DNA of 64,000 nucleotides, from assembly GCA_003427395.1 (NCBI GenBank), contig BFEA01000030.1, forward strand, positions 3,350,171 through 3,414,170, in the 5' to 3' direction. Positions 40,281-63,690 of the stretch are shown here, in pieces. This stretch comes from Chara braunii (lineage: Eukaryota > Plantae > Charophyceae). A model generated the notes under the pieces. That model worked only from the letters and a program-made list of their open reading frames with translations. It was not told the DNA's origin and ran no database searches. The position numbers were made by a program, and so were the translations under genes. Position 1 is the first letter of the stretch; each line of letters opens with the position of its first letter.

Positions 40281-41085
40281 AAAACGTTCCCGAAAATTCT
40301 TCCCTTTTTTTTTTTTTTTTTTTTTTTTTTTCCTTTCGTTGTAGCGCTTTCCCGCGTGCGGACGCCATGTCATTTCAAAGTTTCCGACAAGCTGATTTCG
40401 TCGCAAGAACCTGGTGCATAGGCGGCCGGCCTGCCTGTTTTCATATAGCGGCCGCGTGTCATCTTACCCCCGCCCCTGCCCGCCAGATGAAACACCAAAG
40501 CAGTCCCGGTTTCAAAAAATACGAGTCCCTGGGTCGTAGGCCTGCTGGGCGCCGACCTACGGAGAAAACTGCTCCGCAAGGCCAGGGATGGTGGATTTCG
40601 GTGTATTTCGGCCGGCGGGGGTAGTGGTGGTTTAAAGATGATGTATCCATGCGACGCTGGACCTGGTTTCCAGCAGGTGACACATCCCACCAATGGATGG
40701 AGCAGCCCTTTTGTGAAGACCTCAATTCCAGTGGGTCTCTCACCACCACTGGGATAGAGGCCTTGCAACAGAAAAAAAAGAGAAGAACGGAAGAAGAAGA
40801 AGAAGAATAAGCCCGAGTGCTCAGATGGAGGTTCCACACCCCCCCCACCGATGTGGGGGGGGTTCCTGTCGAGGTGGCGATGATAGGAGGGGTGAGCAAA
40901 AAAAAAGAAAAAACTGGAAAGAAAAAAAGAAACAGAGCGCTCAACAGCAGCAGGGTTTCAAGTTTGGGAATGGGCATACCGTCCCAAAATGGGTATTTTG
41001 CAATCGTATCGTTGGGGAAAAAAAAGGCAAAACAAAAGGAAAGGGAAAGAAGAAAAGAAAAGGAAAGAAAACTCTTGAATACTGG

Positions 41086-42307: not shown

Positions 42308-44097
42308 GGGGGGGAACCCATGAGTGTGACTTCGTTACAACTGATTTCTTTCTTTTTGCCACTCTAAATTGAGACTCCTTTTCCACAGGGAAAACATCTT
42401 GCATACATAGTCTCCAACACAAAAAGGATCATTGAGAAGTAGGACACTACTACCAAGGCGGCACTGAGAAGGTGCTGGTACACCATTTAACAAAAAGTGA
42501 GGGCATATGACCATCTGGGAACGCGTCGCTTTTTTTTTTTTTTTTTTTCAACCACCAGTCCTACAGGGGGGTGCTACGAGCAGCCCCTCCTACTAGACCA
42601 GCCGGTGCTCAAATCTATTGGTGGGGAGCAACACCTGCTGGAAAACGGTTCTAGCGTCTCAATTTCGAGCAGTGAAAAAAACAAAAAGGGGTAACTACGG
42701 TGCAGTCACATTTTCAGTTCGGAATCCACTTCAGGCATCCCTCGAATACAACACATCCCCACCCAACCCTAAAGCTGGGTTGGATACATTCACGATTTTC
42801 CTTGCTTTGGAGTAAAATTCGTGAAACCCTGACTGAAACGCATTTAAAACTGAAAACCTTGACTGTGCCCTAATTTTCCCAAACAAGGGGTAAAAAAAAT
42901 CACTTTGAAAAATTTGGGGTTGAGGGGGCAAGGCGAGATCCAAGGGGGGGGGGAAGGGGCGGGAGGAGAGCATCCAAACATCATAACCACAAATGGCAGC
43001 TTCCAGGAAAGCAGAAGATGGATTTGGTCCACTGACTTGCATCCAATTAGTGTGGTTAATTCAATTGGGGCAAATGTGATTTGCATCTAATCTAAATGTA
43101 TGATTAATTGAATTTAATTCTAGAATTCTGGAGAACAGCACCACCTCAGCTCACCACTGGCCAAGACTTTCCAAGATTTGACACTTGTCTGCAAATATCT
43201 CACTCGTCTGTTATTGGCCAGGTTCATGACCTTAATTGGAAATCTGGAAATGAAGTGAGAAAAGGGAAAGAAGCTAGGCTACCAGCCGGGCTGCCCGGGT
43301 CACCTTGTTTGCCCGGGTGGCCCGGCCGTGCAAGGGNCCTTCTAGGTCCCAGCAAAAAAAAAAAAAAAAAGCCAATCGAAAAACTCTCAAAAACAGAAAT
43401 GCTTTCAGAAATATGAACTGAACAACTTTTTTTTTTTTTTTTTGTTATATAACTGGGAAATGGGCTCGGGGTCCCTTACATCATTTGCTGCGGCCAAACG
43501 GGCTAAGCAAGGCACTATCGGCCAAACCGATCCCTACTGCAGCCCCACAAGGTCATGACATCCAATCCCAATCCCAACCCTAAAACAAAAACCGCATTCC
43601 CTTATTTAAGAAACCGAAATCCTTATCCACCCCTTCTGCCAAACCGGCATTATTAAGCAATCCTAATTTAGCGAATTAAGCAATCCTAATTTAGCGAAAT
43701 CCAAGCCAGGTAACAAATCACCAACCAAAAGCACGAAAACAAGATTGTCAATGATCAAATCCTAGCAACTTTTGCCTCAGGGTCACATCGAAATTCTTTG
43801 TCGAATTCACACTGTGACCCTTTGTACATATGTACGAGTAGATGGGGTGAGGTGGACTGCATAATGCCGTATAATAAGGGTAATTGACGAGTGTAGATAA
43901 GTATCAGGGGATCTTTTGACACTCGGATAGGATAATCAGATAGGACACGGTTACCTTTTATAGGATTGTGGCTTTTTTCTATAGAGTACGAGTAGTGACA
44001 TATGTGACTGACTGTGTGGAAACTCAGATAGGATATGGGTAGCCTTAAAGCTGAGAAGGCCCTCTGTCTTGGAGTTCCCACCTCCCTTCCATACTTG

Positions 44098-44129
<32 letters not shown>

Positions 44130-44639
44130 NNNNNNNNNNNNNNNNNNNNNNNNNNNNNNNNNNNNNNNNNNNNNNNNNNNNNNNNNNNNNNNNNNNNNNN
44201 NNNNNNNNNNNNNNNNNNNNNNNNNNNNNNNNNNNNNNNNNNNNNNNNNNNNNNNNNNNNNNNNNNNNNNNNNNNNNNNNNNNNNNNNNNNNNNNNNNNN
44301 NNNNNNNNNNNNNNNNNNNNNNNNNNNNNNNNNNNNNNNNNNNNNNNNNNNNNNNNNNNNNNNNNNNNNNNNNNNNNNNNNNNNNNNNNNNNNNNNNNNN
44401 NNNNNNNNNNNNNNNNNNNNNNNNNNNNNNNNNNNNNNNNNNNNNNNNNNNNNNNNNNNNNNNNNNNNNNNNNNNNNNNNNNNNNNNNNNNNNNNNNNNN
44501 NNNNNNNNNNNNNNNNNNNNNNNNNNNNNNNNNNNNNNNNNNNNNNNNNNNNNNNNNNNNNNNNNNNNNNNNNNNNNNNNNNNNNNNNNNNNNNNNNNNN
44601 NNNNNNNNNNNNNNNNNNNNNNNNNNNNNNNNNNNNNNN
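44130..44639. other. Assembly gap (further gaps at 22495-23027 and 42149-42243)
   Basis: N runs. Confidence 1.
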
Positions 44640-47600
44640 ACCAATTTTCCCCCCTTGTGGGCCCCCAAGCCAATCGCGGCTGAATTCTTGAGTGTGCTTC
44701 CTGATTTCACTTGTTGAGTGCAGATGTTGGATTTTTTCTTTAACATTGTCCCATTGTGCTCTGATAACTGTTTGTATTTGTTGTATAATAGAGTCAGTGA
44801 ATTCAGGACCATCTAACCTCACCCCTTCCATCTCATTGGTACATCTCCTCGTCCATATGGCCCAAAGTACCGCTCTTCTTCCGGTTGTGAATAAGTTATG
44901 AGTAAACTCATTGTATGGTTCTGGTTCCCGTGATTCCAGCAATATGGCCCTCCATTCCCAGGGCCACTGGCAACATGTACCTAATGTATCCCAAATCCTG
45001 TCCCACCATCTCCACAACCAAATAACCCCTGGTCATTGTAGGAAGATATGCTCGATTGTTTCAGGGATTATTCTAACCGGGAAAGCAGTCTTACAAAATC
45101 GACACTAGGGAAGAGCTAACCCTTTCTGTTCCAGAGTGGTTCTACTAATCAACCAGTCATTTGTGGGAAGGCAGCGATGTTCTATTTGCCATTGTAATGA
45201 GGCTACTTTGGTTGGTTTACATTTCATCTTTCGGAACCATTTAATTGATCTTAGGATCTCTCTGCTTAGATTCAGCTGCTTTATCCATTTTTCTCCCACC
45301 CTGTCTTTTATGTTTACACTAGGTCTTAACATCCTATATGTCGATTTGACAGACAAGGTGTGAAGCATTCTCTTATATTTGCGACCTCTCCCTCTTGCTG
45401 AGGTCCACACCCAATTCTTGGGATCCAATGCAAGGCACTGGATTGGTATGTTGGGTTTGAAAGCCAACCATGTAGTGTTAAATTTCAGGACTCTGATCCT
45501 GAAAACTTGCTCTCCATCAACCCATCTGGTCTCCTCATCAGGATTAAGAGTGATTGTATGATCCTGTGTTAACCTATATAGGGTCAACAGATAATCACCA
45601 TTGGGGTTGATTTGCAAAATATTCCCAATTAAACTAGATTGGTTTATTATGGATACCCGATCTCCTTCTTCCAGTTTAGGCCCTTTTCTGAGGATCTTAA
45701 TCCAGTCCAATGGGATTAATTCCACAATTTGTTCAAGCGTTGTCGAGCGCATCGGCCCTCGCGCGAAAACGAGGGCCCTCCCGGCCATGTCACGCAGGAG
45801 TTTATCTAAAAACATTATCAAGAGACAACTCGGGAACGACGCATTACGAACCGCCGAGACGGACGCGGTTGCATCGCTCCTTCGCCGCTCTAGCCGGGTA
45901 CGCCAGCTATACATCCCACGCTCCACTACGACAGGATAGGTTTTCGCGGGGCATAAGCTTGCATCCCTAAGGGGCTGTCACCACCCTTAGGGCGTATCCC
46001 TACCGAGCTATTAACCCACGTGCGAAGGCTTTTAAATGCAATCGCAGAGGTAGATCAGCCGAGGGCGTTTGCTCGTCTCGCTGCAGTATAGGAGTCGCTT
46101 GGTTAACGCCAAGTGGACCCAACGCCGTTCGTCCCCCAGAGCGCTGATCTCCGAGGTAGGAAGCGGACGTAAGTCGACTAGGAATGTCTCAACCAAGAGT
46201 GAAACCCTTCATTAATCCTAGTCCCTTAAACATAAAGTCAAACGAAAGTTACGACCACCATACATATAATTATATCTAATGGGATCGATCGTAGCCGACA
46301 CGAATAAATATTCTCAGTATGAAAAGATAACTGAAGAAAAAAAAAATACAAATCATCATTTTATACATCAAATAACACAAGATCAAAAACTATCCGGCCA
46401 CCTCAGGTCGAATACCACAAAACAATCAAAACAACTGCCAACGAAAAGTTGGCTAATCGAAAATAATATTGATGTTGCCAACATGGTAGTCGGACAACCT
46501 CAGTTTTGACTGGATGAGATGCGTTACCAAAGTCATTCATTCCATCCTATCGTCGATCTAAGATTCGACGCGCATACCTGTCTTCGTTCATTTTCAATAT
46601 TTTTGGATGACAAACCGCTTGCACATGATTTTTGATTAGGGGCATTGCTTGACGTGAAGCATGCCTCTTCCTCTAGGAAGCAGTTTGGGGTACTCCTCCT
46701 CGTCCGAGCACAAGACTCGGATCTCAGAAGTCGGACCGTCTCCACCGAATCGGCAAGTACCCCCCCGTAGAACTGTCCACTCTGGATCGCTAACAGGGTC
46801 GGCTCCTGAAGCAACGAACCCCCGTCCCAGATGCTTCCTAGAGATAGCGGATGCGTCCATCGCAAGTAGCTTTGAAATTCACATATATATATATTTTTTC
46901 TCCTAAGTCTTGGGGTAACTTAAACGAAAAAAACTCAGAAGAGATAAAGAAAATGAGAATCATTTAGACAAGTACAGGTAGATAAGGTCGTTCCGGATAG
47001 AATGGGTCAATCCTTGGGAAAAGCTAAATCCGTTTGACCTTATCTGCTTTATTTCAATAAAATTCGTTCTTTGACACACGTTGAATAACATTTTTCCAAA
47101 AGAACGAGTTCTTTTTGACAAGCAGGCAGGTGAAAGGAAGAAAGAAGACAATCCTTTTCCTTTTCTCCAACAAGCGAAGTCAATCTCCATAGCAGGCACC
47201 CTTCTACCTACCTGCACAACATGCAAAAAAAACAAGTTCAAAGGAAAACAGTACAATCCCATACTCGAGTCAGACCACTCCATTCACATGCATGACTCAC
47301 ACAACTTTCTTCTGCCTTTTCTTTTGAACATTCAAATGATAAGGTCAAGCAAAGTGCGGGTTCACACAGGTGTGAAGGGAACTGAATCAGGTTAACTGAC
47401 CTTGAGTGAAGTTTGAACGGTACACTCAAGAAGACCGTATAAACTTTTCGTTCTCCTGACGAGAAGGTTATCGTACCCAGTCGTCACCAAAGTGATCGAC
47501 ACCACTCTCTTGTGATGACTGCCTGCCAGAGCATCCTCTCGGCACTCAATCACTTCCCAATGTTGAGGCAGCGTTACCCTGTTACCGCCACTTGGCTTCA

Positions 47601-47756
47601 AAANACGGCGTCTCCGCGGCGTCACCCTCACGCCACTTCAAAGTAAAACACCGCTTGACGCACCTTCTCTGTGTCAACGTCCCACCTCCACTTTCTGCAA
47701 AAATACTGCAGTTACTAGTGCCGTCGCTGTAAGAATCCGATACTGACGCCGTAAAA

Positions 47757-48188
47757 AAAAATCCGGCAGCGCTTCCGCACTACCGCCGAAAAAGCCAGAA
47801 CCACTGCCACAAAAATCGGGCAGCGCTTCCGCACCACCGCTGAAAAAGCCAGTGCCGCCGCCGCAAAAATTGGGCAGCGCTTCCGCACCACCGCTGAAAA
47901 AGCCAGTGCCGCGGCTGCAAAAATCCGGCAGCGCTTCCGCACCACCGCCGTAAAAGTCCGCGTCGCCGCTGCAGAATTTCAGCAGCACTTCCGTACCGCC
48001 ACAGTAAAAACCCGCGTTGTTGCCGCAGAATTTCGGCAACACTTCCGTATCACCGCCGTAAAAATCCGCGTCGCCGCTGCAGAATTTCGCAACACTTCCG
48101 TACCACCGCAGTCAAAACCCGCATCGCTGCCGCAGAATTTCGGCAGCACTTCCGTACCACCGCTGTAAAAACCGGAGTCGCCGCCGTA
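47757..48188. repeat. 54-bp minisatellite, ~8 units
   Basis: aaaaatccggcagcgcttccgcaccaccgctgaaaaagccagtgccgccgccgc grading into an agaatttcggcagcacttccgt... variant. Confidence 0.9.
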
Positions 48189-49064
48189 GTCCTGCAGCGT
48201 CCTTGGTTCCGTCCCGTTGGACCAGTGTCAGCTGAAAGGGAGGGAAGCAGAGTGCTCCCTGCCTTGGCTATGGCTGCCCAGTTCTCCTCCTTGCGCTCCT
48301 CTGCAGATCTCCAGCCTCCTCCAGCAGCAGTCCTCCAGCTCCCTCAGCTTGCGCCCCAACAAATGAGGCAAGTGTGTTGCCGCATACTGGCAGCTGGAGG
48401 CAAGTGTGAGGCAGCTGAGGGGCAGCTGCCTTTTTTATAGTGGCTAAGGAGGGCAGCAGCAGCCTCAGCTGCCCCTAGGCAAAATTCGTCACTTGCCTGG
48501 GGCCCTTGATCTGAGCACGATCAAGGGTCTGAGGTCGTCGCACCTCAGCCACACACTTAGGGAGGCAGTTGTACTCAACTGCCTCTTTCATTTTTCCTTC
48601 TTTTCCCTGCACTCATCTCTTTTCTGAGTACAGGTACATCAACAAAGAAGTTGCACGAAGTCACTTTCCCCCTCTGACCCTTTAGTTCAAATTTCTGGCC
48701 TGAATGACTCCATTCAGGCCAGTTGTTCCTGAATGTGGTGCATGGCCGCGGCCACGTTCGCGGCCGTGACTGTTCTTTTCCCTCCCCTTGTCTTCTTTTC
48801 CTTTTTTCCCCTGCCCTCCCCTCAAAACGGGGATGACAGTTGTCAGATTGGGAGAGGTAGGGCCTCCTTCTCCCGTCCCCTCCCGTTTCTCTCTCCCTCT
48901 CTGCTGCCCCTCAGTCCCACTCCCAACGCGCACGTTGTGGGCCGCGAGATCTAGGCCACGAATATTCGTGCCAGACGAGACTGGGAGCTCATCCTGCTCC
49001 CACACAGTTGAAAAGACTGTGTTTCTAACTGTGAGGCACAAAGGCCTCGTTTTTGTTTTGTTTT

Positions 49065-49127
<63 letters not shown>

Positions 49128-49410
49128 GTTTTTAGTTTTTGTTTTCACCCTTCTCGTTTTTCCCTGTTAGTCGTGTTCCAACGGTTGCGAACGGGGAGGG
49201 AGAAGACAAAAAAAACTCAAGAGAAGAAAAAAGAAAGAAAAAAAAAAAAAAAAAAAAAAACTTACCTGTAATGATGACTGGCGACCGTAGCAACAGCAGT
49301 GGCCTTGGCCACTGCCTGCGGGCTGTATTCTCCCGCGTTCTGGAGGGAGATTCATTCGATTTTGCTCATCCTATTCGTGGAAGTACCACAGGGCCAACCA
49401 CCAGGTGGGT

Positions 49411-49444
<34 letters not shown>

Positions 49445-49484
49445 CACCCGTATCTAGGTGCGTTCAGCGCCACATTTAGGCGCA

Positions 49485-49553
49485 GTGCAGTTCGTCGAGA
49501 TCCAACCTCCTGATGAGTCGGTGAAACCCGACGAAACAATCTGTGAGCTGCAC
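49485..49553 (+). ncRNA. Type III hammerhead ribozyme
   Basis: GUC (49494-49496), stem I gag/ctc, CUGAUGA (49510-49516), stem II gtcgg/ccgac, GAAAC (49533-49537), stem III gtgcagttc/gagctgcac beyond a 7-nt bulge. Confidence 0.8.
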
Positions 49554-49785
49554 GAACGGACGTTTATAGGAAAAGAAACTAAAAAGAAGAATAAAACAAA
49601 AAAACTAAGAGAAAATCTAAAAAACAGAGAATCTAAAAAAAATCTAAGAACAAAAAAAACAAAAAAAACAACTAACCTCCATAGGCAAAACGGGTGCTCG
49701 TTTTCAACGGGCGCCTTCTGGATCCTTTGGGGACTGTAAGTCCCCAACTTCTTCATACAGCGCCATCTTGCGCGTTCGTGGATCA

Positions 49786-49823
49786 CCACGAACTGTTGAG
49801 ATACAGACCCGAGTTCGATTCCC
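49786..49823 (+). repeat. tRNA-like module (same family as 18048-18085 and 56011-56072)
   Basis: gaactgttgagatacagacccgagttcgattccc with B-box. Confidence 0.7.
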
Positions 49824-49835
49824 TGCGGGGAATCG

Positions 49836-49895
49836 AAAAAAAATTCGAACCATTTCTCGAATTATGCGTGTTATCCTTGCGCAGGGGCCATGCTA
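49836..49895 (-). pseudogene. U6: U6 snRNA 3' half including the oligo-U end
   Basis: Reverse complement tagcatggcccctgcgcaaggataacacgcataattcgagaaatggttcgaatttttttt. Confidence 0.92.
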
Positions 49896-52800
49896 CCATC
49901 GCGCGGCTGATCTCAGCCGCGAGATCTTACGATCGGACGACCGAGATCGGCCGCGCTTGGATACATTGGGCTGCTCCAAAAAGGAGCAAGCACCAGTGGA
50001 TACGTTTCTTCATACTCGATCCCAGTATCAGTCAAGTAGTAATCTGCTGTCATAACCCACTGGGCTAGCTCTTATCACAACAGTGATAAAAGCTGCTCTT
50101 CTATATGAAGAGCTGCCCAGTCACTTCTGCCCCCATGCCGTAGCTTCGCAAGCTCTGTCTGCCTGCGGCCCTACAGGCACTACTTACCTGTGGTCGTGCA
50201 GACCCGCTTGCGGTCCTGCGGCCTTGCTCGCGGCTGTGCTGCCCTGCGCGCAGCTCTGTAGCTTTGTGTAGGGCCCTGTTGCTGGCGAGCCAATCTGTCG
50301 TTAAGACGACAACTGTCTGATGGCACGGCACACATGCCACAGCCACAACCACTTATTGCACCTGCTAAACCCTAAATCGCGCGGCCTACGGTCGCGCACT
50401 ATCTTTTAAGGTAGAATAATCTAACTCAAATTCTAGACGTCTGCATGCTTTTGCGGCTTCAGCGAAATTAAAATATCGTTATTTCCGGACATGAGACGCG
50501 TCCGGACCAAAGTCTAAAATTTTAACTTCTCAGTCATAGGTCTGGTCTGAATAAACTTTTGGTAAACGTCAGTCTCATCAAGTCCTTTAATCCAACGAAA
50601 GAGTCGGACAACATCCGACGTTTAAAATTCGACAGCGCTTCCTTTGAATGATGGCAATAACGTAGCTGCCCTTGTAATTCATCCACTGATATCCAGTCTT
50701 TATGATCCACATTCCAAATGTCTTTAATTCGCATGACACCCCTCTTAATCCAACTTTTCTATGGTGAATCCATATAATTGAGAACATATCCTTGTGAATT
50801 CCTGATCCTACCATTATTGAAAAAGGGTTGTCGGTACACTTCTTCCCATCTATCAGAAGCTACTTTATCTGGCAGGGGAAGTTCTCTCCAGGTTTTTAAC
50901 AAGGTAGGCTAAAACGGGTCTTTATTCAAATCCTTTCGAGCTGCACTATGATCTGAGATAACTCGATCTTCTACTTCATTTGATGCTTTCCTGGGAATAG
51001 TCCATGATGTATTTTCTAACCATATCATAGGATCTATATTATCAGGGGCTTCTGGAGCTAGTCGTCTAATTTGTTCCCATGCCAATTCTTTCCATGGAGT
51101 CTGAGGATTAAATAGTAATCTCTTAATCCACTGGATAGACAACGTCATTCCTTGTGTTCCCGGGTCAATAATTCCCAGCCCCCTTTTGACCTTTGGCTGT
51201 ATCACTGATTGCCAGGCCATTCTAATGATGACGTTTTGATATTCATGATTTCCACGCTAAAGAAAAACTACCGCCTGTCTTTGTAGAGACTTTGTCGCTG
51301 TTTTATCCATTGGCCATATTGTTGATTTGTACCAAGAAGAAGTCAACACTACATTGTTAATGATGATTGCTCGTCCCATTACTGAGGTATGCTTATTTTT
51401 TCATAATTCTAGCTTTGTTTGTGCTGGTTGAGTAATTCATTCATTATTCGTAAGTGGCTTTCCTTCTGCAGTGAGTGATATACCCAGCACTCTAACTGGA
51501 GTGTCTAATGAGACCCATTTCACTCTAGGCTGCTCAGGAGGTCGTACTCCCTGATAGTGGATCCACCATCCTAAGGTCTTATTACCCCAGTTGACCCTCA
51601 TATCAGAAAGGCGATAAAAGTTATTCATCATTCTCTGTACAACTGTCAGATTTTCATGTTATGCTTCTATCATGAGAGATAAATCATCAGCAAATAGGGA
51701 ACATACTGGTATAGCTTCTTCAGGTATAGATGTGACTTGGATGCGTTTGATGTCCTTATGTTTCCTTAGATTAGCTGCTAACGCTTCCATTATAATGATA
51801 AACAGGAAAGGCGCGATCGGATCTCCTTGCCTGACTGATCTTTGTAATGAGATAGGTGGAGCGACATTACCATTGATCGTTACTCTAGTAGTGGCATTAT
51901 GGTGCAGAATATCAATCAATCTCCTGAAAATATGACCAAACTCAAGCTTTTCAAGACACTTGTCCAAGAAATACAAATCCACATGATCATATGTTTTCTC
52001 AAAAAATCTATAAAAAGAATAACCGCATTATGTTTAGATTGGTGAGATAATTTAATCATTTCATTAATTAATAAGACGTTGTCCCGAATATTCCTCTCAT
52101 TTATGAACCCAGTTTGAGCTGGGTGGATAATATTCATTATGACTTTATTTAATCTGTTTGCTAGGGCTTTCGCTATTAACTTATAAACGACTGTGAGTAG
52201 GGTGATCGGGCGGTAATTGCGAATATTAGATTTACTTCTTTTTTTATACAATAAAGTTAGTACTCCTTGACCAACTATTTCCCCCATTTCACCCGTTCTC
52301 CATACTGTTTGGTAGAAATCCATTAGGTCGTGAGAAAAAAAATCCCAACTAGATTTCCAGAATTCCTTTGGGAAACCATCAATACCTGGTGTTTTCTCGT
52401 CTTCCATTAACATTAAGGCTGTCCAGATTTCGTCGTTAGAAAGAGGCAATTTAAGCATCTTCTGTTGTTCCTTTGTCATATTCTTAGTTAGTGGTGATAG
52501 GAAGTCCTCAATTTCCTCATTGCGTTGATGTCTTGGAATATCTCCAGTTCCTGATTGAAATAATTAAAAAAAAAAATATCTCGCTATCTTAGTACATGCT
52601 GCCGAGGATGTAACCATCTCACCATCATTACTTTGTGGGTCAGTTAATGCTTCTATCACTGTTCTTCCAGTCCTTATTCTAGTCATTGCAAAGAAACGAG
52701 CATCCATTGATCCTTTCGTATAATGTTTTCTGAGTTTTCCTATGATCTTATTCCCTTGCCAACGGTACTCAATGTGGCTTAATAGTTCCTTTTCTAGCTT

Positions 52801-54851
52801 AGTGATCTCTGATGCTAGGGTTTTCATGACTTCTGCATCTTCTTACTTAGTTTCCTGATGCTGTAATTCTTGAATTTGCTGTAGGATGTATATTTCCTTA
52901 GAATGACGTTCTACTGCTAATGCTTTTGAATACTCATTAATATTTACGACTTAAAAACATTAGGCCGTTGTTGAACCATTTAACATTATCATTTATCATT
53001 TCCTTTTGTTCCTTCCAGAATTTTCAAACGTCCTTAAGATAGTTTCTAAAATTGTCAATTTTAAGATGAGAAGTGTTGAGTTTGTAGAACCCTTTCCCCT
53101 GATCCGTTTTTTCCTAAACGAGAATATAGCCACACTCATCGCATGATCAAGACCTAGAAAGGGGGAGCGAGGAAAAATTCCCGCCACCTGTAATGCTCCT
53201 TGCATCTCTTTTGATACTAATATTAGATCAATACGAGACTTAGTGTTCTGACCTGCTCTCCCTTTCCTAAAACACGAGAATGTCTTTTGTGTTGGATTAA
53301 TCCTCCAATAGGAGTCAAATGACTTCATTCATTGGCATAGATTAGATATAATCAACTAATCTGACTCTATATAGTCAGGGCATGGGGAAGGGAGTCTCTA
53401 TCTATCTTGATAACGGTTAGGTGCTGCGTTGAAATCCCCAGCTATAATCACTGGGATACCAACAGGTAGCTGAGGGAGGGAAGAAGTGAAGAATCTTTGA
53501 CGATTGCCAACCTCATTGGGTGCATAAATACATAATATACTAACAACCTCTATTTCAAGCATCGCCAGAATGTTTACCCATCTACCTTCCACTTTATCAC
53601 CTTCCCAATTTATCACCTTCACTTTGGAGTCTGGAGGGATCCATATAGCCACCCCTGCGCTCCCTGGTCTGNAAAGCTCAGGAAAGCACACAGCGTCTAC
53701 GAGCTGCCGCTCTGGTCAAACTGGTCATACGTTCCTCGGCGCCCAGACAATGAGCTAAGCTTCAAATCCAGCAAGAACTTATGGTTGTTCTTGTCAAGGT
53801 TCCAATACCCAAAAGGCTTGACTGGCTGCCTCCACTGCTCCTTAGTTTTCTCACACTTGTCTTTCATCTCATATATGTGCTCACGGAATTTCTTGTCGCG
53901 CTCCTCTGGGTCCTCCATCCCTTGCCTAATTAAGGCCTCTGCGAACTCCAGGATGAAAGACATTCCGCCGTCCGTCCGCTCAAATAGCACCCCCTGTGCG
54001 ATTCGGTGTTGCACGCAGCTTACAACAGGATAGACTGTGGCAAACCACAAACAAAGCAGGCTCCTTCTGGAAGCAGAGCAAACAAAACTTTTTCCTTTCT
54101 GGGGTGAGTGTGAATAGCACTCCACATCATCAGGCAGAACACCGCAGGCACTGACATACGGCGTGGCCGCGGGCTCGCAGCCCATTGTCGAGTGGAGTGA
54201 CGAAACGCCGGCAGCAGAGTAGAGCCCTCGAAGTACGTAATGGCCACCTACCTATCTGTGCTAAGAATCATCATCGTCAAACCCCAACAGGCAATCTACA
54301 AACACGCCACCAACGAAACCCTGAACAATCCTCCTCCCGCCGGAGGGGCGACCCTCCCCCTTCTTGATTGAGCTTGCAGGTAACGTGGCATACGTGGCAT
54401 GAAAAAAATGGAATTTTCTTTTTTTTCTTTTCTTTTTCCCCCCTTCTGCACGGGGATTGGTCCTGCCAGTTCGAGGATTGGCCCTGGGGCTCAAGGGCAA
54501 CGTTTTCAAGCATAGGTTCTTGGGACTGCGGAGCGAAAAAACGAGTTAGGGAAAATTAATCACCTTCCCGGAGTTAGGGTGCCCTTGAAACTCAAGTATT
54601 TTCAACTGGTGTCGAACAAGGCCCTCTTTCCTCCTCTCATTTTTCTACCTACTTTTCTCCTCTTTTCCTCTTTTCTCCTTACTTTTCTCCTTTTTTTTCT
54701 CTTTTTTGGAGTTTGTTTCCTTTTCTTGTTCCACTCTCTGACACAAGTGCCAACAATTAGGAGTAGTGGTAGGTAGGTAGTGTGAGGTGAAATTGAGAGA
54801 AGAACATAGCTTTTTTTTTTTTTAAGTGGTTTTAAATAAAAGAAAAAAAAA

Positions 54852-56947: not shown

Positions 56948-58475
56948 TTTTTTTTTTTTTTTTAAACGAAACCACCCGGGTAGATGTTAAGGGTGCTGGT
57001 AAGAGCAGACACCACTAGCATTCCCAGGTGGGCTCCATCTATTGGTGGGGAGCAGCACCTGCTGGAAAACGGGTCAAGCGTCCCTTGAAAACAACTTCTG
57101 ACATTCCAACATAAGTTGATGTGTGCCTGAACCAAATTGGAAACAACTACCTCTTCACCCACTTGAGCGGGGGCCAAATCTAACCATATCAAGTTAGTAA
57201 CTATTCCAAGACACTGATTTAGCTATTCTTCCAAAACACCTAGACTTTGAGATCCAGCATCTTCCGGAGGTCAATCATATCTGTACCAAGAACTTCTGGG
57301 CGACAAAATTTATCCATCATTCTCTGTACAGCTGTCAGATTTTCATAGACATTGGCGGTGGAGGGAAGGGATCTGATTTCGCGAAGGGAAGGGATCTGGG
57401 AACACCTAGAAGCTGTCAGATTTTCATAGACATTGGCGGTGGAGGGAAGGGATTTGGTAATCCCCAGTTAGTAACTATTCCAAGGCACTGATTTAGCTAT
57501 TCTTCCAGAACACCACTTTTTTTCTGTTGAACTTGGGACCATAGACATTGGCGGTGGAGGGAAGGGATCTGGGAAACCTGCGACAGAGCGAAGGGGGATT
57601 GAAGGGTCCACCACTATCCAATCAAGGAAAAACAATTTGTAATCTCTGCAAAATCCTTCATTTTTCGGACTCTTTCCCCCTTCCCATTTAATTTCCCCCA
57701 ACTTTCTTCCCTGGTTCCCACCGAAACAACTATGACTGAAATGTTTTATATGTTTGAGAATTTCAGATTTAGAGGATAGATGTTATATTTTATTTTTTGT
57801 TCGTTCCCATTCATTGAGAAGCTCCGTTTGGATCTGCTGTTTGATTGTTTCAGTGAACTCGGGGCCATCTAATCTGCCTCCTTCCATTTCGAAGCTGCAT
57901 CTCCTTAACCATATAGCCCACATGACCGCCCTCCTTCCAACAGTGAATAGATTTGTGTGAACTCTTCAAAAGGTTCAGGCACCCAAGATTCTAGTAAGAT
58001 AGCTTTCCAGTCTCATGGCCAGGGGATCGAAGGGTGAAGTTCATATTCGGTCCCACCATCTCAACAGCCATATGGCTCCAGGGCATTGCATGAACATATA
58101 TTCTATTGTTTCTGGAATGCCAGAGGATGAATGGGTAAAGTTGACTCCGTATTCGGTCCCACCATCTCCACAGCGAAATGGCTCCAGGGCATTGCATGAA
58201 CACATATTTCATTGTTTCTGGGATCAACTTACTAGGAAAAGCAGACTTACAAAAATGACACCAGCGTGTAGCAATTCCTTTCTGTTCTAGAGAGAATCTA
58301 TCTATTACCCAATCGTTAGTGGGGAGACACCTATGCTCAATTTGCCATTGAAGGGATACAAACTTTGCTGGTTTTGCTCTCATAAGTCTCAACCATTTTA
58401 TCCGGTTGATTTCTTCTTTGTCGAGATTGAGACGTTTCATCCATCTCTCTGATACTTTATCTTTTAGGTCGACAG
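56948..58475 (-). mobile_element. 3' fragment of the same LINE family as 44640-53690
   Basis: LQWQIEHRCLPTNDW...WCHFCKSAFP; structured tail and poly(A) at 56948-57084; internal duplications. Confidence 0.8.
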
Positions 58476-61400
58476 TGGGTGGGCGTAACTTGTTCCAAGC
58501 ATAAAGAATCTGACGCCAAAGCATCAACTTCGCCCAACGCTGAGTAAAGGAAGGAAGACACAAGTACAACCAAATATCTTCATGATGTACTAACTTTCAG
58601 TCTGTACTGCTAAGACAAACCAAAAGGTAGAAAACGCAACAACCGATACGACTATGACCCATCCCAACAAGGAAAAGAACTGGCCTTTCTCCCATGTTCC
58701 TATCTTCTCTATCACTTGATTTCCCGGTAAGTTATCTTGTGTCTGTGCACAATTACTCATAGAGACTTGAACTCCGAGAAACCTTCCAGATGCAGTAGGC
58801 GGGAGAGTCTTCATACCCCAATCCCCTTTGAAGGTAAAGGTCTCAGACGAAGTACAATAGTCATCCAAGACAGGTCGCAGTTACTCGTTGCTTCCGTCGT
58901 GCTCTCGCAGGGGACCATGAGGTCGTCTGAGATGGCATCCCCTTTCCAATGGAAAAAATGAGTCACTCTCGACCTTTTATCTGTTCATTGTGCCTAATAT
59001 TGTCCAACAAAACATCAAGTTGAAGCACAAATAGGAAAGGGGCTAGAGGGCAGCCTTGACGAAGAGGGCGGTATAAGTCAAAGGGACGGGATAAGAGGCC
59101 ATCCACGTTGACTTTCGGTGAGGCCGGGGAGTACATTGCTTTGACAAATTTACAAAAGACTGGCCAAAACCCATGCACGGTAGAGTTGTGGCTACAAATG
59201 CCCAACCTAATTTATCGTAGGCCTTCTCCAAGTCCAAGAGTAGTATGGCTACTTTTTTTCTGAGCCTATCACTTCAAGAGTCTGGATTGTCGCCAATATA
59301 TTTTCAAAAATTGATCTCCCCTTTACAAAAACTCCCTCTTGTGGACCCATCACGTATGGCAAGTACCGTGGCAGTTTTTTTTTTTTTTTTTTTTTTTTTT
59401 AACACGCCCCCACCAGTGTTAGTGGTGTTGATAAGAGCATACACCACTAGCACCTGGGGAGAGGCTCCATGTATTGGTGGGGAGCATCACCTGCTGGAAA
59501 ACGGGTTCAGCGTCCCATATACAGTGTCTGTCTAAAATCAAAGCATATCGGAGAAAAATGCGGGATATTCCTGCCAGCATTGACTACCCCGGGATCCAGG
59601 GGATTAATTGAGTAGGATATTGGAATGGGGGGAGGGAACCTCTTCACCCTGGACCTGGCACCGGATACCTGTTGCTACACACCGATTCCTCCCTCCCCCT
59701 ATCTTTTTTTAGCTACATCTTTATCGATATTGCAGTCCTTTTTACAATTGTTGTGGCCGGCAGGGGGAACATATCAGGAAATTCCCCTGGACTCTTCATC
59801 GAAATGTCGGGATTGACTTGAAGCCATTCATGGAACTCGAGATTGCAGTCCTCGGCGAATTCAATGTCTCCCTTTTTGTTCTCACTTTCCTTCGGACAGA
59901 CGATGTATGCCAACCTGCCTCCCTTTTCCCCTCCCAACCAGTTTGCGCAGAAGATACTGATTTATTTTGTAATGTCTGCTTTCTGTGTCAAGTGTTTCAT
60001 CTTTTCCTGTGTTTTTTTCCATCGCACTCTTATTTTAGTTTCTATAAGCTGTCTAACCATTTCTGTCACGTATCCTTTCCCCATCATGGCCCCTTCCTGA
60101 TCAAACACACATCTTCAGAATCTTATCCATAACGCCCATATCACTGTCTTCCTGGCGGTGACGAACAGATTGTTGGAGAAGTTGGAAGTTGGCAGCCTTC
60201 CCTATATTCCTAGTAGGATTGTTTCCCATGTCCAAGGCCACTCCTCCTCAGTACCCAGTAATGCCACATTAGTATCGCCCCTGGGCACTGGAGGAAGATG
60301 TGTTCACATACTTTGCGACTCGGGAATCCTGCATAGCTGAGTTTACACCATGGGAGAGCCTCCCCTTTTTGTTCCAGATTGGTTCTGTCAATGATCCAAT
60401 TGTTGGTGGGAAGGCATCTATAGAATATCTACCACTTCAGGGCAACAAATTTGGCCGGTCTCTCCTTTACTCCTTTAAACTACTTTATTCCTTTTATCTG
60501 ATCATCGTCCAGGTTTAGGTGTCTCTTCCATCTCTCCCTTACCACTGTCTGCACATCTACCTTGGATCTAATCATTATGTAAGTATTCTTATCGTTAGCC
60601 TAGTGAGCTTGACTTTTTGCCCTGTCCGACCTCTCTCCTATTGCCATTCCAGCGGATCCATGGCTAAACTGGACAGGGGTACTTCTGGGCGATAGACCTG
60701 CTATTCTATCTTACCTCCCTTGTGTATTTGCAGCACCCGTATCCGATTGAGGTTGGCTTTCTCGTGCCACTGGACATAGTTTAGGCGGTACCTTACCAGG
60801 GTGTCATCCCTTTTCCTTTCAAATATATTCACCATAGCTCCTTCAGTTCTCACCTCTACCACACACCCTATTTGTAGGGGGAACCCCTCTGCCGCAATTG
60901 TCACCCAATCCTGTTCCTATAAGGACTGTCCTTTTTTCATGATCACCACCCAGGCTAAGGGAATGAAGAATATTAGTTGTTCCATCCTGTCTGCTAAATT
61001 GCAGGCATGTCGTAGACAGGGTATTATTTATTGGATTGTTTTCCGATCTTCAATTGCCTCATCCCATATATCCCTAACTAGAAGAATCCCGTTTCCAACT
61101 CATGCAACCCACTGAAGGTCCGAGCTACAAAAAGTCCGGCCTTGTCTATCTATGATGACTTTATTCCCAAACAGGGGCTGGTGCATAACTTCTTCCATCC
61201 ATTCTGGGGGGGGGGTATCTGTGATCGGCAGCCTTCTCCAATTCTTGATGAGGTTGGCCCAGAATTGGTCCTTAGCAAGATCTTGTCTTGCTGCTCCTCG
61301 ATCTCCTTCCTCTCGTGAGTGTGAATTGGCTTGTGGGATGGACCAATGCCGGTCCTCAATCCAGGTCAACGGGTCTACTCTCAGGGCGTCTCTTGGGGCC

Positions 61401-63690
61401 AGCCTACGGATCTGTTCCCTGACCAGATTCCACCGAGGAGGGGTTATACCCAAGATTAGTTTCTTAACCCATTGGATTGACAGTGTTGTAGCATGCAGAG
61501 AGGGATCCAACAACCCCATTCCCCCTTTCCTCTTAGGCTAAATCAATGTATCCCAAGCCACTCAGTTTATCACGTATTGCTGGTCCGAGTCCCCTCTCCA
61601 GAGGAAGGGCGCGAGTTGCTTTTTGAGGGATTTTGTACTATTCTTACCAAGTTGTCAGAGGGCCAACTTATACCAGATAGCTCCCAACGCCTCGTTATTA
61701 ATAATTAGCACCCTCCCAAAAATTAAAGTGTTTCTGTTTTTCCACTTTTGCATTTTCTCTAGAGATGTTTTCGTGAGTCATTCATCATTCCCTTTTGGTA
61801 GTCCCTGCGTTGATAGTTCTACCCCCAGCACGTGAATCGGGTCCTCTAGAGGTCTCCAGTCCACTTTTGGTTGTTTCGGGGACGAACCCCGTAGTAATGG
61901 ATCCACCAACCCTGCGTCTTGCCACCCCAATTGACGGTCATATCTGACACCCGAGTGAAATGCGGCATCAGGGCTTGGATTTCTGCCATATTGCTTTGGG
62001 TGGCTTCTGTTACTATTGTCAAGTCATCGACAAACATCGAGTAAATGGGTATGGCATCTTCAGGGATGCCCGTCATACGAAGTCTAGAAATTTTCTTGTT
62101 TGTTCTCAAATTGGCCCCTAAAGCTCCATTACTATGATGAAAAGGAAGGGGGCTATGAGATCTCCTTGCCGCACAGAGCGTTGCAATCTGAGTTCTTGTA
62201 CAAGCAAGTCAGTCACATGTAGTCGCGTTATTGCGTTGTGGTGAAGGATTCCTTTCCAGTCCCGAAATTGATGGTTAGGGCTTTAGCAAGGATCTTATAA
62301 GCTACGTTTAATACGGAGATGAGTCGCTAGTTGCGAATTTTTGTTTTAGGTCTCTTCTTATATAACAAGGAAATAATGTCTACCGAGAGACCCATGGGGA
62401 GACTTCGTTCCAGGGACGCTACGTTATAGATCCCAGACAAGAGAGGGGCCATGACCTCCCAAGTGGCTGAATACAACTCTACTGAGAGGCCATCAATCCC
62501 TGAACACGTGCCAGTTGACATAATCCTGACAGCTTGGAGTAAATCCTCTTTGGTGAACAGTCTGTCCAGGTCTAATCTGAGTCCGGTCCCAAAAGGTAAA
62601 GGATAAAGACAGATAGAGTCAAAAGAGTCCGCAAGGCGGACTGTTGTTAAAATGTCTGAGAAGTATTCCACAACGTAGTCACACATAGAGGTACTGGTAA
62701 GTGTTGGTGGCATGTCAAAGGAGAACGAGCGATAAAGTTCTCTTAGTAGTGGTTTGGTGCCCTAAGAGAACAAAAGGTAATTTAGTCATGCGATCTTGAC
62801 CTTTCAGGCCCCGCACCTTTAGCCATTCCAGCCACTGTTTCTAACGTTGCGTTTCTTGCACCTCCAGCTGGACTAGTAGAGGTCCCTGTATGGGTCCTGA
62901 TCCAATTTGGATTCTGCATCTCGGATGGTTTGTTTTCTGCTTTCGCTAACCCGCCTTAGTCTGGGAGAAGACATCTAATGCCGAATGCAATATAGCAAAG
63001 CCAATATCCACCCAATCATCGTAGTTGGAGAGGCCCCTTCGCTCCCTCCCATTTCAATACCTGATCTTTATCCCAGTTGATGATGCCCACATCTTTTAAA
63101 TGAGACACATTTAGTCTGAAAGTCCTTTGAAATTTCCTCACTTGGTCCCTGGACAAAACGTAGTTTGACCATAGGCAACGCTCCCAAAGGACCCCACAAA
63201 CAAACAACATATCCAACCTCCGGCCAAGAGGCGGGGTATGCTCATCAGGCACTGCTCCAAACCACGAAAACCCAAAAGTATCCGGGTTGAGGACACGAAA
63301 GATGTATACTAGGAAGTGGGCAACCATTAGTTCGAGCAAAGTCGTAGTGTCTGCGCGGATCGGGTTCAGTCGGGGTGAGTCCAGACCCAGAGTTAGGGTC
63401 GTGTTCCAGTCCCCGACAACCAGTAAGTGCTCTGTGTCTGGGAGAAAGGCCGGGAGATCGGCAAAAAAATTACAGTGGACTAGGAAATTGACTGGCGCGT
63501 AGACGGACATAATACCCCAATCCTCATTTCCCACAACGATGTTTACCCATACAAAACGGCCCGAAGTGTCCACAAAGTTGTCGAAAATTTCCACGTTCAG
63601 ATACTTGTGAAAAATCATCGTCATCCCCCCTTTCGAATCACCCACCGGGGCCAAAAACTGTGGGTCCGGCCACCATCTCACACAGTCTGC
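58476..63690 (-). mobile_element. Older L1-like LINE (APE + RT) interrupted by 59375-62270
   Basis: APE SVYAP, VGDWN, RRLD (63016-63681); RT YKILAKALTI (~62271) continues as LPRYLP..FVKGRSIFEN, DLEKAYD, LRQGCPLAP left of 59374. Confidence 0.85.
59375..62270 (-). mobile_element. 5'-truncated LINE nested in another LINE
   Basis: RT VRQGDL, FVDD; similar to 50635-51980; ends in the structured tail and poly(A) at 59375-59516. Confidence 0.85.

Follow-up and report, generated by a model that had tools for sequence, protein, structure and literature searches.

The Chlamys Penelope-like elements (PLEs) of Chara braunii carry a canonical hammerhead ribozyme at their 3' end, are present at very high copy number and show an insertion bias towards (CA)n (Craig et al. 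2021, PMC8557442), and short non-autonomous derivatives of PLEs have been described as 'non-LTR retrozymes' (bioRxiv 10.64898/2026.07.22.740005). The LTR retrozymes of plants are composed of two LTRs of 300-400 bp, each with a hammerhead, together with a tRNA-Met primer binding site, a polypurine tract and 4-bp target-site duplications, and produce circular RNAs (Cervera et al. 2016, PMC4918200). U6 snRNA takes part in another type of chimera, as shown for mammalian U6/LINE-1 fusions, in which full-length U6 lies at the 5' end in the same orientation as its partner RNA, with poly(A) and target-site duplications (Doucet et al. 2015, PMC4476161; Moldovan et al. 2019, PMC6789731).

The locus considered here brings pieces of these kinds together within about 700 bp (49260-49950) of a 64-kb window, the window being the whole stretch of C. 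braunii DNA that was analysed (64,000 nucleotides). A first-pass annotation had described a leader with a (TC)n-looped stem, a type III hammerhead, an A-rich spacer, a tRNA-like module and an antisense U6 3' half, and had suggested that these could form a single self-cleaving retroelement. Following analysis of depth, junctions, RNA models and transcripts, it is considered probable that 49260-49950 belongs to a 1.7-kb block of repeat DNA, old and silent, in which fragments of separate, very abundant families are patched together.

Organization and abundance of the repeated block

Depth was taken from public DNA contigs of the same organism, summed over the window in 60-nt bins; contig stretches were counted only if at least 80% alike, and the summed contig depth is not equivalent to copy number. 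A repeated block of 1.7 kb spans 48661-50368 between single-copy flanks, with single-copy DNA from about 50369, and its depth per 60-nt bin runs from ~60 to ~90,000 versus ~15-22 in the flanks, contrasts that partly reflect the divergence of this old copy from each family. The features of the block are, from left to right:

48661-48904, unstranded: C/T-rich repeated segment at the left of the block, depth up to ~6,700 versus ~15-20 in the flanks
48941-48952, plus strand: GCCGCGAGATCT, first of two exact 12-mers (sequence match)
49048-49260, unstranded: long foldback by inverted repeats, made of a T-rich run (T59, 49066-49124), a G+C-rich hairpin (49144-49205) and an A-rich run (A23, 49238-49260)
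49318-49385, plus strand: diverged fragment of a very high-copy element landing in microsatellites, summed depth ~87,000-92,000
49396-49464, plus strand: hairpin with a (TC)14 loop, -21.3 kcal/mol, z -2.95, nearly single-copy (depth ~60-70)
49485-49553, plus strand: type III hammerhead motif, Rfam match 49489-49542, predicted cut after C49496
49561-49675, plus strand: A-rich spacer, 68% A, three A8 runs and repeated AATCTAAAAAA, depth ~170-300
49676-49785, plus strand: low- to moderate-copy linker with a hairpin (GGGGACTGTAAGTCCCC) and a remodelled D-arm region (GTTCGTGG atca CCACGAAC)
49786-49835, plus strand: SINE-like tRNA-derived fragment with box B and without box A, depth ~11,000-14,000
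49836-49843, unstranded: plus-strand A8, read on the minus strand as the U8 tail of the U6 fragment; junction of the tRNA-like piece with U6
49839-49896, minus strand: U6 snRNA 3' half (Rfam), 5'-truncated, from about nt 50 to the end, closing in a U-run
49897-50368, unstranded: right part of the block, with the second GCCGCGAGATCT, a CGAGATCGGCCGCG motif and a high-copy patch at 50064-50124
49916-49927, within the right part of the block: GCCGCGAGATCT, second exact 12-mer

Loose ends, at which other contigs run on into sequence unlike that of the locus, occur at nearly every module border, with 70-178 records at each of 49337, 49348, 49385, 49786, 49849 and 49895, so most copies of each module have different neighbours. 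Among RNA reads, 29-58 loose ends fall at each of 49506 and 49542. Each module at 49260-49950 is worn relative to its own family, U6 lacking its 5' half, the tRNA-like piece its box A, and the hammerhead having weakened stems I and III, and the orientations of the modules are mixed. The inter-module stretches stand at ~4-25 times single-copy depth.

Self-BLAST found no second copy of 48600-50400 in the 64-kb window, matches being confined to the U6 piece and a high-copy fragment of 43 nt, and low-stringency BLAST among the three parts of the block gave nothing significant. No LTR pair, primer binding site, polypurine tract or terminal repeats lie next to the block, and none of the modules could be assigned a target-site duplication, the candidate 10-mers all being at chance level. 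Repeated 10-mers (ACTTACCTGT, CTGCCTGCGG and others) were also ruled out as signs of circular permutation on the same counts. The surrounding DNA is repeat-rich, with a LINE nearby and other nested repeats.

The left leader, sub-repeats and hairpins

The left segment is itself repeated elsewhere, a paralogous contig spanning 48694-48859 at ~83% identity, as is the right part, for which a contig spans 50163-50309 at ~94%. The short repeats noted earlier were borne out by GCCGCGAGATCT, found exactly at 48941 and 49916, where ~0.1 such 12-mer pairs would be expected by chance in 1.8 kb; it represents a GGCC..CGAGAT.. sub-repeat type with four more occurrences upstream of the other U6 copy in the window (17930-18050). 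The G+C-rich hairpin within the foldback folds at -22.8 kcal/mol (z -2.3), and the stem with a (TC)n loop was recovered as the (TC)14 hairpin listed above. U1 snRNA identity was considered for the ACTTACCTG start at 49260 and rejected, as no Rfam U1 match was obtained at E<=10.

The fragment at 49318-49385 belongs to an element whose other copies begin just after (CA)n and extend beyond 49385. Its core gave no exact-pattern match in metagenome contigs, and a second copy in the window lies at 1890-1945 on the minus strand, beside (CA)n. Homology to the local sequence is visible in some of the loose ends (63% at 49318-49347), and the leader and hammerhead could therefore be one diverged element rather than two.

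The hammerhead motif and its family

The Rfam Hammerhead_3 model (RF00008) scores 42.5 bits at 49489-49542 (E 6.7e-6 for the window), below the gathering threshold of 48.5. The conserved core CUGAUGA...GAAA is present at 49510-49536 (CUGAUGAG at 49510-17, CGAAAC at 49532-37), with a GUC triplet at 49494-96, and stem II is a perfect 5 bp, whereas stem I has 3 bp and stems I and III each contain two non-standard pairs. The type III hammerhead called at first pass thus stands in its core and stem II but is weakened in its other stems. An outer helix of 9 bp pairs 49485-49493 with 49545-49553; the in-register fold is at -8.9 kcal/mol, and the fold with a shifted outer helix at -20.7 versus a minimum free energy of -22.4. 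It is the only hammerhead in the 64 kb at E<=0.05, no other credible core being found.

Contig depth over the motif is ~1,900-2,700. RNA reads of the hammerhead family share only 49506-49542 with the locus, have a canonical stem III (AGATTG/CAATCT) and span the predicted cut site, and 49485-49553 is a decayed member of this expressed hammerhead family. In about ten contigs, the hammerhead and the high-copy segment lie 16-36 nt apart over a CA-rich linker, which, with the fragment beside (CA)n at 1890-1945, fits a stacking of both in microsatellites. Copies of the hammerhead family adjoin CA-rich linkers; the local one has (TC)14 upstream and no tandem partner. The motif would most likely derive from the hammerhead-carrying Chlamys PLEs, either as their 3' end or as a non-autonomous derivative. 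The A-rich spacer that follows was present as claimed and is read as either a retroposon-type tail or simple sequence.

The tRNA-like fragment and the U6 3' half

The proposed tRNA-like module (here 49786-49835) is upheld in part by its box-B-like GAGTTCGATTC, which lies inside two perfect hairpins (z -4.4) and within a perfect 10-bp palindrome (TTCGATTCCC/GGGAATCGAA), and by its membership of a repeat family, but it was rejected as a tRNA both by ARAGORN and by the Rfam tRNA model (E<=10). No T-run follows it on its own strand. Most family copies bear a box A/D-arm (GCTCAGTTGGTA) just upstream, as judged from contig loose ends, and the loose ends before 49786 read ..GGGCCTAGCTCAGTTGGTACAC. 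A fuller copy in the window (56073-55895, minus strand) has both box A and an A-rich tail, with no Rfam tRNA match at E<=1, and alignment revealed a core common to this copy, the local one and a third at 18 kb.

The antisense U6 3' half with its U-tail was confirmed by Rfam (RF00026; 45.7 bits versus a gathering threshold of 44), the match covering model positions ~50-105 only. There is no ACAGAGA box and no 5' half in this copy, and no upstream sequence element was matched with up to two mismatches at 49897-50000 on the minus strand, using a land-plant consensus that may not apply to this alga. The U6 piece has a contig depth of ~55,000-69,000. The local copy differs from the majority at two bases, almost every other copy having 49861 A>T and 49872 T>C, and most of the others run on behind 49895 into the rest of U6. 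On the U6 strand no poly(A) follows the U8; the antisense tRNA-like piece is found there instead. The second U6 copy in the window (18069-18181) adjoins the same 27-nt tRNA-like core in antisense, with 23 of 27 positions identical.

Expression of the local copy

Transcription was assessed from two poly(A) runs, in which small or circular RNAs could be missed. The two runs held no read at least 99% identical to 48600-50400, and 1 and 11 reads, respectively, at 95-99% identity. Neither the RNA ends at 49496/49497 nor the circular junctions that had been proposed as checks appeared: no end pile-up was seen in the two runs, nor any circular back-joint, for which poly(A) libraries are poorly suited. 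The copy at 48661-50368 is silent in these two poly(A) runs.

Recurrence of the combination and its proposed origin

Paralogous pieces of the mosaic take the form of short contigs, each spanning part of it. Low-depth contigs at 80-94% identity cross the junction of the pre-tRNA sequence with the tRNA-like piece, that of the tRNA-like piece, A8 and U6, and that of U6 with the downstream sequence, and the junction of hammerhead and spacer is likewise crossed by low-depth contigs. Identity is ~93-94% for the junction-spanning contigs at 49451-49597, 49610-49746 and 49718-49841, and ~80% for those at 49794-49920 and 49862-49987. Together with the inter-module depth, these crossings suggest that the mosaic recurs as a low-copy composite, and at least some form of the combination is thus present elsewhere in the genome, contrary to the refuting case named at first pass, in which the modules are found together nowhere else.

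This bears directly on the possibility that the locus is a one-off local pile-up of independent insertions and rearrangements, the combination having no other copy. The lack of a second copy in the 64-kb window, the very different abundances and borders of the modules, and the nearby LINE and nested repeats are all in keeping with such a history, which is nevertheless regarded as rather unlikely, given that contigs at 80-94% identity cross the three right-side junctions as well as that of hammerhead and spacer, and that the inter-module stretches are several times single-copy depth.

The same junction-crossing contigs, the ~4-25x background depth across the block and the second adjacency of tRNA-like and U6 sequence in the window argue for the proposal of one non-autonomous, self-cleaving retroelement family composed of a hairpin leader, a hammerhead, a tRNA-like Pol III head and an antisense U6 tail. 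Such a family is judged unlikely, slightly more so than a one-off pile-up. Every module is truncated, and the much larger family to which it belongs has different neighbours; the modules do not share one orientation; box A and a following T-run are both missing from the tRNA-like part; and the hammerhead, the only one present, has decayed stems and falls below the Rfam cut-off. Terminal repeats, a primer binding site and a target-site duplication are lacking, and the local copy is unexpressed, with no cleavage ends or circles in the two poly(A) runs. The idea of a combined element in the first-pass annotation hence survives in the co-occurrence of the modules elsewhere, as in the junction-crossing contigs and the U6 copy at 18 kb, but one coherent element is not supported, each module mostly having other neighbours and being truncated or decayed.

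On the patchwork reading, the constituents would be (a) part of the high-copy element found in microsatellites (49318-49385), (b) a decayed member of a family of short, hammerhead-bearing retroelements (49485-49553), (c) a tail rich in A, (d) a SINE-like fragment of tRNA origin that lacks box A and (e) a 5'-truncated U6 retro-pseudogene on the opposite strand. A single A8/U8 run is common to the tRNA-like piece and the U6 half, for which target-primed reverse transcription would be the simplest mechanism: an A-tailed SINE-like RNA may have been primed on the oligo-T of the U6 pseudogene, which would give the minus-strand order U6, U8, antisense SINE 3' end, as seen. Once formed, the composite may have been copied as a passenger of a larger repeat, reaching ~4-25 times single-copy depth, and a Ty3/gypsy-type element might have supplied this carrier in the form of its long LTR. 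One candidate within the window, the gypsy element at 29965-40310, was discarded because its LTRs are short and stop at the 30282 primer binding site, a long way from the block.

Cassandra TRIMs are LTRs that carry Pol III genes (5S rRNA). By a bolder reading, the hammerhead, tRNA-like unit and antisense U6 half would together be cargo, conserved as a cassette that a Ty3/gypsy family amplifies in its long LTRs and that serves in the life cycle of the element, for example through ribozyme processing of read-through RNA or borrowed Pol III/terminator signals, a Cassandra-like capture of several host RNAs and a ribozyme. The block is moderately repeated, as such cargo would be, but beside it there is neither an LTR pair nor a primer binding site nor a polypurine tract, the paralogues are just 80-94% alike with differences spread along the block, the motifs are decayed and the local copy is unexpressed, all of which makes a conserved cassette improbable. 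It is highly improbable that the region is an exon/intron part of a minus-strand host gene with incidental RNA motifs, as perfect 5' splice-site matches (CAGGTAAGT, minus strand, 49260-49268 and 50182-50190), two ACTTACCTGT 10-mers and small minus-strand ORFs might suggest, given that no RNA-seq read at 99% identity or above maps to 48600-50400 in the two poly(A) runs, the ORFs are short, with no homologue for that at 49694-50065, and chance alone would give ~1.5 repeated 10-mers in 1.8 kb.

As a patchwork, the locus alone carries little weight, being silent debris in an alga whose hammerhead-bearing retroelements are already published. It is, however, one data point in a genome-wide pattern, in which the depth of U6-derived sequence is thousands of times that of single-copy DNA, and hammerhead elements, tRNA-like units and U6 halves are repeatedly found side by side. 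Should this pattern stem from LTR or LINE reverse transcriptases having captured and amplified such sequences, the genome would hold a rich natural record of template switching and small-RNA-tail priming outside mammals.

Comparison with known systems

Unlike in Cassandra TRIMs, no LTR pair was found near the locus, and the U6, present as half a copy, runs antisense to the adjoining sequence and has no promoter elements. The tRNA-like family resembles tRNA-derived SINEs in that its copies have box A (GCTCAGTTGGTA) and box B (GTTCGA..), with an A-rich tail in the 56-kb copy, whereas the local piece has no box A, is rejected by tRNA models and ends in a 10-bp palindrome and A8 rather than in a SINE body and tail. 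In contrast to the mammalian U6/LINE-1 chimeras, the local U6 lacks its 5' half, has neighbours in the opposite orientation and is not followed by poly(A); as with mammalian U6 retro-pseudogenes, it is a promoter-less U6 copy dispersed by reverse transcription, and U6-like sequence is hugely amplified (summed depth ~55,000-69,000 versus ~15-20). With plant LTR retrozymes the locus shares a type III hammerhead in non-coding, repeated streptophyte DNA, but it has one hammerhead in 64 kb, no direct repeats, no nearby primer binding site and no circular joints in poly(A) RNA; the sole tRNA-Met primer binding site in the window (TGGTATCAGAGC, at 30282) is part of the unrelated gypsy element.

The Chlamys PLEs, compared here by their published description, differ from the locus in that the latter has no PLE ORF, pseudo-LTR or tandem copy and that its stems I and III are degraded. 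Common to both are heavy truncation and a canonical hammerhead core set in a non-coding repeat that is dispersed at high copy number, and the (CA)n bias of these elements may have its counterpart in the local hammerhead family, whose copies adjoin CA-rich microsatellite sequence.

Composition of the mosaic and its borders

With moderate confidence, we favour a reading of the small-RNA mosaic at 49260-49950 in which retroposed pieces of separate families came to lie side by side and were later duplicated along with a larger, moderately repeated element that carried them. The comparison drew on two sets of DNA contigs and two of poly(A) RNA reads from the same organism, aligned to 48600-50400 at 80% likeness. 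Besides the U6 piece and a 43-nt fragment (1895-1937), no second copy of 48600-50400 was found in the 64-kb window.

Summed contig depth along 48600-50400 in 60-nt bins. Summed depth is not copy number and also varies with the divergence of the local copy from each family.
Flanks, 48600-48660 and 50369-50400 (single-copy level): 15-22
49332-49392: ~87,000-92,000
(TC)n hairpin: ~60-70
Hammerhead: ~1,900-2,700
A-rich spacer: ~170-300
tRNA-like piece: ~11,000-14,000
U6 half: ~55,000-69,000
49942-50002: ~400

The loose ends of the aligned records are more telling than the depth figures. At each of 49337, 49348, 49385, 49786, 49849 and 49895, 70-178 records continue into a consensus unlike the locus, which indicates that the modules here are truncated or decayed representatives of much larger families, most of whose members have other neighbours. 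Related copies inside the window (56073-55895 and 1890-1945) agree with this separate-family picture.

The first-pass annotation had described a (TC)n-loop hairpin, an A-rich spacer and GCCGCGAGATCT-type repeats, and all were found: the hairpin with a (TC)14 loop (z -2.95), a spacer of 68% A and two exact GCCGCGAGATCT 12-mers. Its tRNA-like B-box module survives in part. A box-B-like GAGTTCGATTC lies inside a 10-bp palindrome without mismatches, an equally perfect hairpin of 8 bp stands before it (z -4.4), and copies elsewhere carry a box A/D-arm (..GGGCCTAGCTCAGTTGGTACAC) immediately before 49786, but ARAGORN called no tRNA at the locus and the Rfam tRNA model gave nothing there at E≤10, so identity as a tRNA was rejected. 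A fuller copy at 56073-55895 (minus strand) follows three 24-nt repeats (cacgctcaaaggcactccctatta). It combines box A and the shared core with a ~100-nt body and an A-rich tail, is devoid of U6, has no Rfam tRNA match and is probably a tRNA-derived SINE.

Recurrence of the mosaic

Judged from contig sequence, the mosaic recurs at low copy number. The modules do occur together elsewhere, as low-depth contigs span their junctions, and the depth of the inter-module stretches is roughly 4-25 times single-copy.

Low-depth contigs crossing module junctions, with identity to the locus.
49188-49358: ~90%
49451-49597: ~94%, hammerhead into spacer
49610-49746: ~94%
49718-49841: ~93.5%, linker, tRNA-like piece, A8 and U6 start
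49794-49920: ~80%, from the tRNA-like piece across the U6 half and past it
49862-49987: ~80%
49929-50068: ~91%
50163-50309: ~94%

Next to the U6 copy at 18069-18181 the 27-nt tRNA-like core occurs again, in antisense and with 23 of 27 positions identical, and near that U6 copy lie GGCC..CGAGAT.. sub-repeats like those flanking the 49260-49950 locus. No LTR partner for the repeated block (~48661-50368) was found within the 64-kb window, and the sole tRNA-Met primer binding site in the window belongs to an unrelated gypsy element (29965-40310).

The U6 half and its junction with the tRNA-like piece

Across the 64-kb window Rfam matched U6 twice, and the second match bears out the antisense 3' half with U-tail that had been proposed.

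Rfam U6 matches in the window.
18069-18181, plus strand: near full-length U6, 79.8 bits
49839-49896, minus strand: U6 3' half with terminal U-run, spanning model positions ~50-105, 45.7 bits (gathering score 44)

The fragment, half a molecule with no promoter element, was rejected as a U6 gene. Most U6 copies elsewhere run on into the remaining U6 behind 49895, and at 49861 and 49872 nearly all differ from the local one. Read on the opposite strand, the U-tail of the fragment appears as the A8 at 49836-49843; the tRNA-like piece and the U6 half thus meet in one homopolymer run, which suggests priming on the U6 oligo-T. An A-tailed, SINE-like RNA would have been primed there by a LINE-type endonuclease and reverse transcriptase, a process that would also account for the antisense order of the two pieces. 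Template switching was rejected as the origin of that order because it leaves both RNAs in the same orientation (Doucet et al. 2015, PMC4476161; Moldovan et al. 2019, PMC6789731). The minus strand has a degenerate LINE, with domains for endonuclease and reverse transcriptase, at a distance of 1 kb; nothing ties it to the proposed priming event.

U6-like sequence at 49820-49880 reaches a summed depth of ~55,000-69,000 against ~15-20 for single-copy sequence, and in most copies an A-run follows on the U6 strand, pointing to massive amplification of U6 retro-copies in the genome. At a loose end at 49893, sixteen reads of poly(A) RNA run X7 fuse the U6 3' half to ..GTCATCCGGCCCCTCGGGACATCC (U6 strand), which resembles the U6 5' stem-loop and suggests an expressed U6-like RNA that has lost its middle, ACAGAGA box included. 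The copy at 18069-18181 is flanked by inverted repeats of 101 nt (17669-17769 and 18434-18534, 85-87% complementary), and upstream of it are a T-run, A17, the antisense tRNA-like core and four GGCCACGGCCGAGATGT sub-repeats of ~36 nt; 17669-18534 has the look of a U6-bearing foldback or MITE-like unit.

Other features of the window

29965-40310: Ty3/gypsy LTR retrotransposon; LTR pieces 29965-30270 and 40006-40270 (93-98% alike), tRNA-Met primer binding site 30282-30293, RT and RNase H 35400-36743
50909-54185, 43755-45926 and 63016-63681, all minus strand: degenerate LINE copies, endonuclease/reverse-transcriptase domains broken by stops and frameshifts
27173-27347, 56948-57097 and 59380-59529, also 19853 and 20533: short repeat family of three to five copies (73-90% identity), opening with a T-run on the plus strand, hence A-tailed on the minus strand; probably another SINE
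47703-48190: 54-bp tandem repeat, ~nine units, 70-88% identity, adjoining the repeated block on its left
15409-15602: near-perfect palindrome, 96-nt arms, 96% complementary, 2-nt gap; strong but spurious miRNA-model scores

Expression

With 6% and 12% of the two poly(A) runs read, no read matched the locus at ≥99% identity; 1 and 11 reads, respectively, matched at 95-99%, and all aligned RNA is paralogue-derived. RNA ends at the predicted cleavage site (49496/49497) and circular joints had been suggested as evidence to look for; neither an end pile-up nor back-joints were seen in these poly(A) runs, libraries which small or circular RNAs would escape. Hammerhead-family reads continue across the predicted cleavage site.

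The hammerhead and its relation to known elements

The type III hammerhead annotated at 49485-49553 holds up in its core (CUGAUGAG ... CGAAAC) and its 5-bp stem II, both intact, but stem I is limited to three pairs, two mismatches interrupt stem III, and the Hammerhead_3 match at 49489-49542 (plus strand), the single match added by a permissive Rfam scan, stays at 42.5 bits, below the cut-off of 48.5 (E = 2.3e-7 in a 2.2-kb scan, 6.7e-6 in the whole window). The in-register ribozyme fold reaches only -8.9 kcal/mol; an outer helix in shifted register (49485-49493 with 49545-49553) gives -20.7 kcal/mol against a minimum of -22.4 and can hold the junction together. No other credible core occurs in the 64-kb window. 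Family copies elsewhere share only 49506-49542 with this one; upstream they read ..GCAGATTGTC followed by AAGGGTTCAG, forming a perfect stem III with CAATCT, and downstream ..ATCATCATGGTG and then a T-run. The local hammerhead, though its score is sub-threshold, is homologous to an expressed type III family and belongs to it.

On its leader side, the high-copy segment (49318-49385) lies ~100 nt away at the locus, with the (TC)14 hairpin between. Elsewhere this segment begins right after (CA)n and extends beyond 49385; before 49348 the family consensus is 63% identical to the local sequence (manual count), so the local copy, which is old, reaches beyond the aligned part. Some ten contigs link 49368-49374 to 49501-49509 through a 16-36-letter CA-rich linker ending ..GATTGTCGGGGTCTCAG, which makes segment and hammerhead often close neighbours, either as parts of one short element or as two elements stacked in the same microsatellite target. 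At 1890-1945 (minus strand), a 52-nt fragment of this very high-copy element has a long microsatellite of (CA)n/(CG)n on one side and T12 with (GATT)n on the other, a setting that fits a microsatellite-targeting retroelement.

A plant retrozyme was rejected, the locus having one hammerhead and neither an LTR pair nor a primer binding site (cf. PMC4918200). According to Craig et al. (2021, PMC8557442), Chara braunii contains very many copies of Chlamys-type Penelope-like elements, one type of which has a canonical 3' hammerhead, and Chlamys elements insert preferentially at (CA)n and (C)n.
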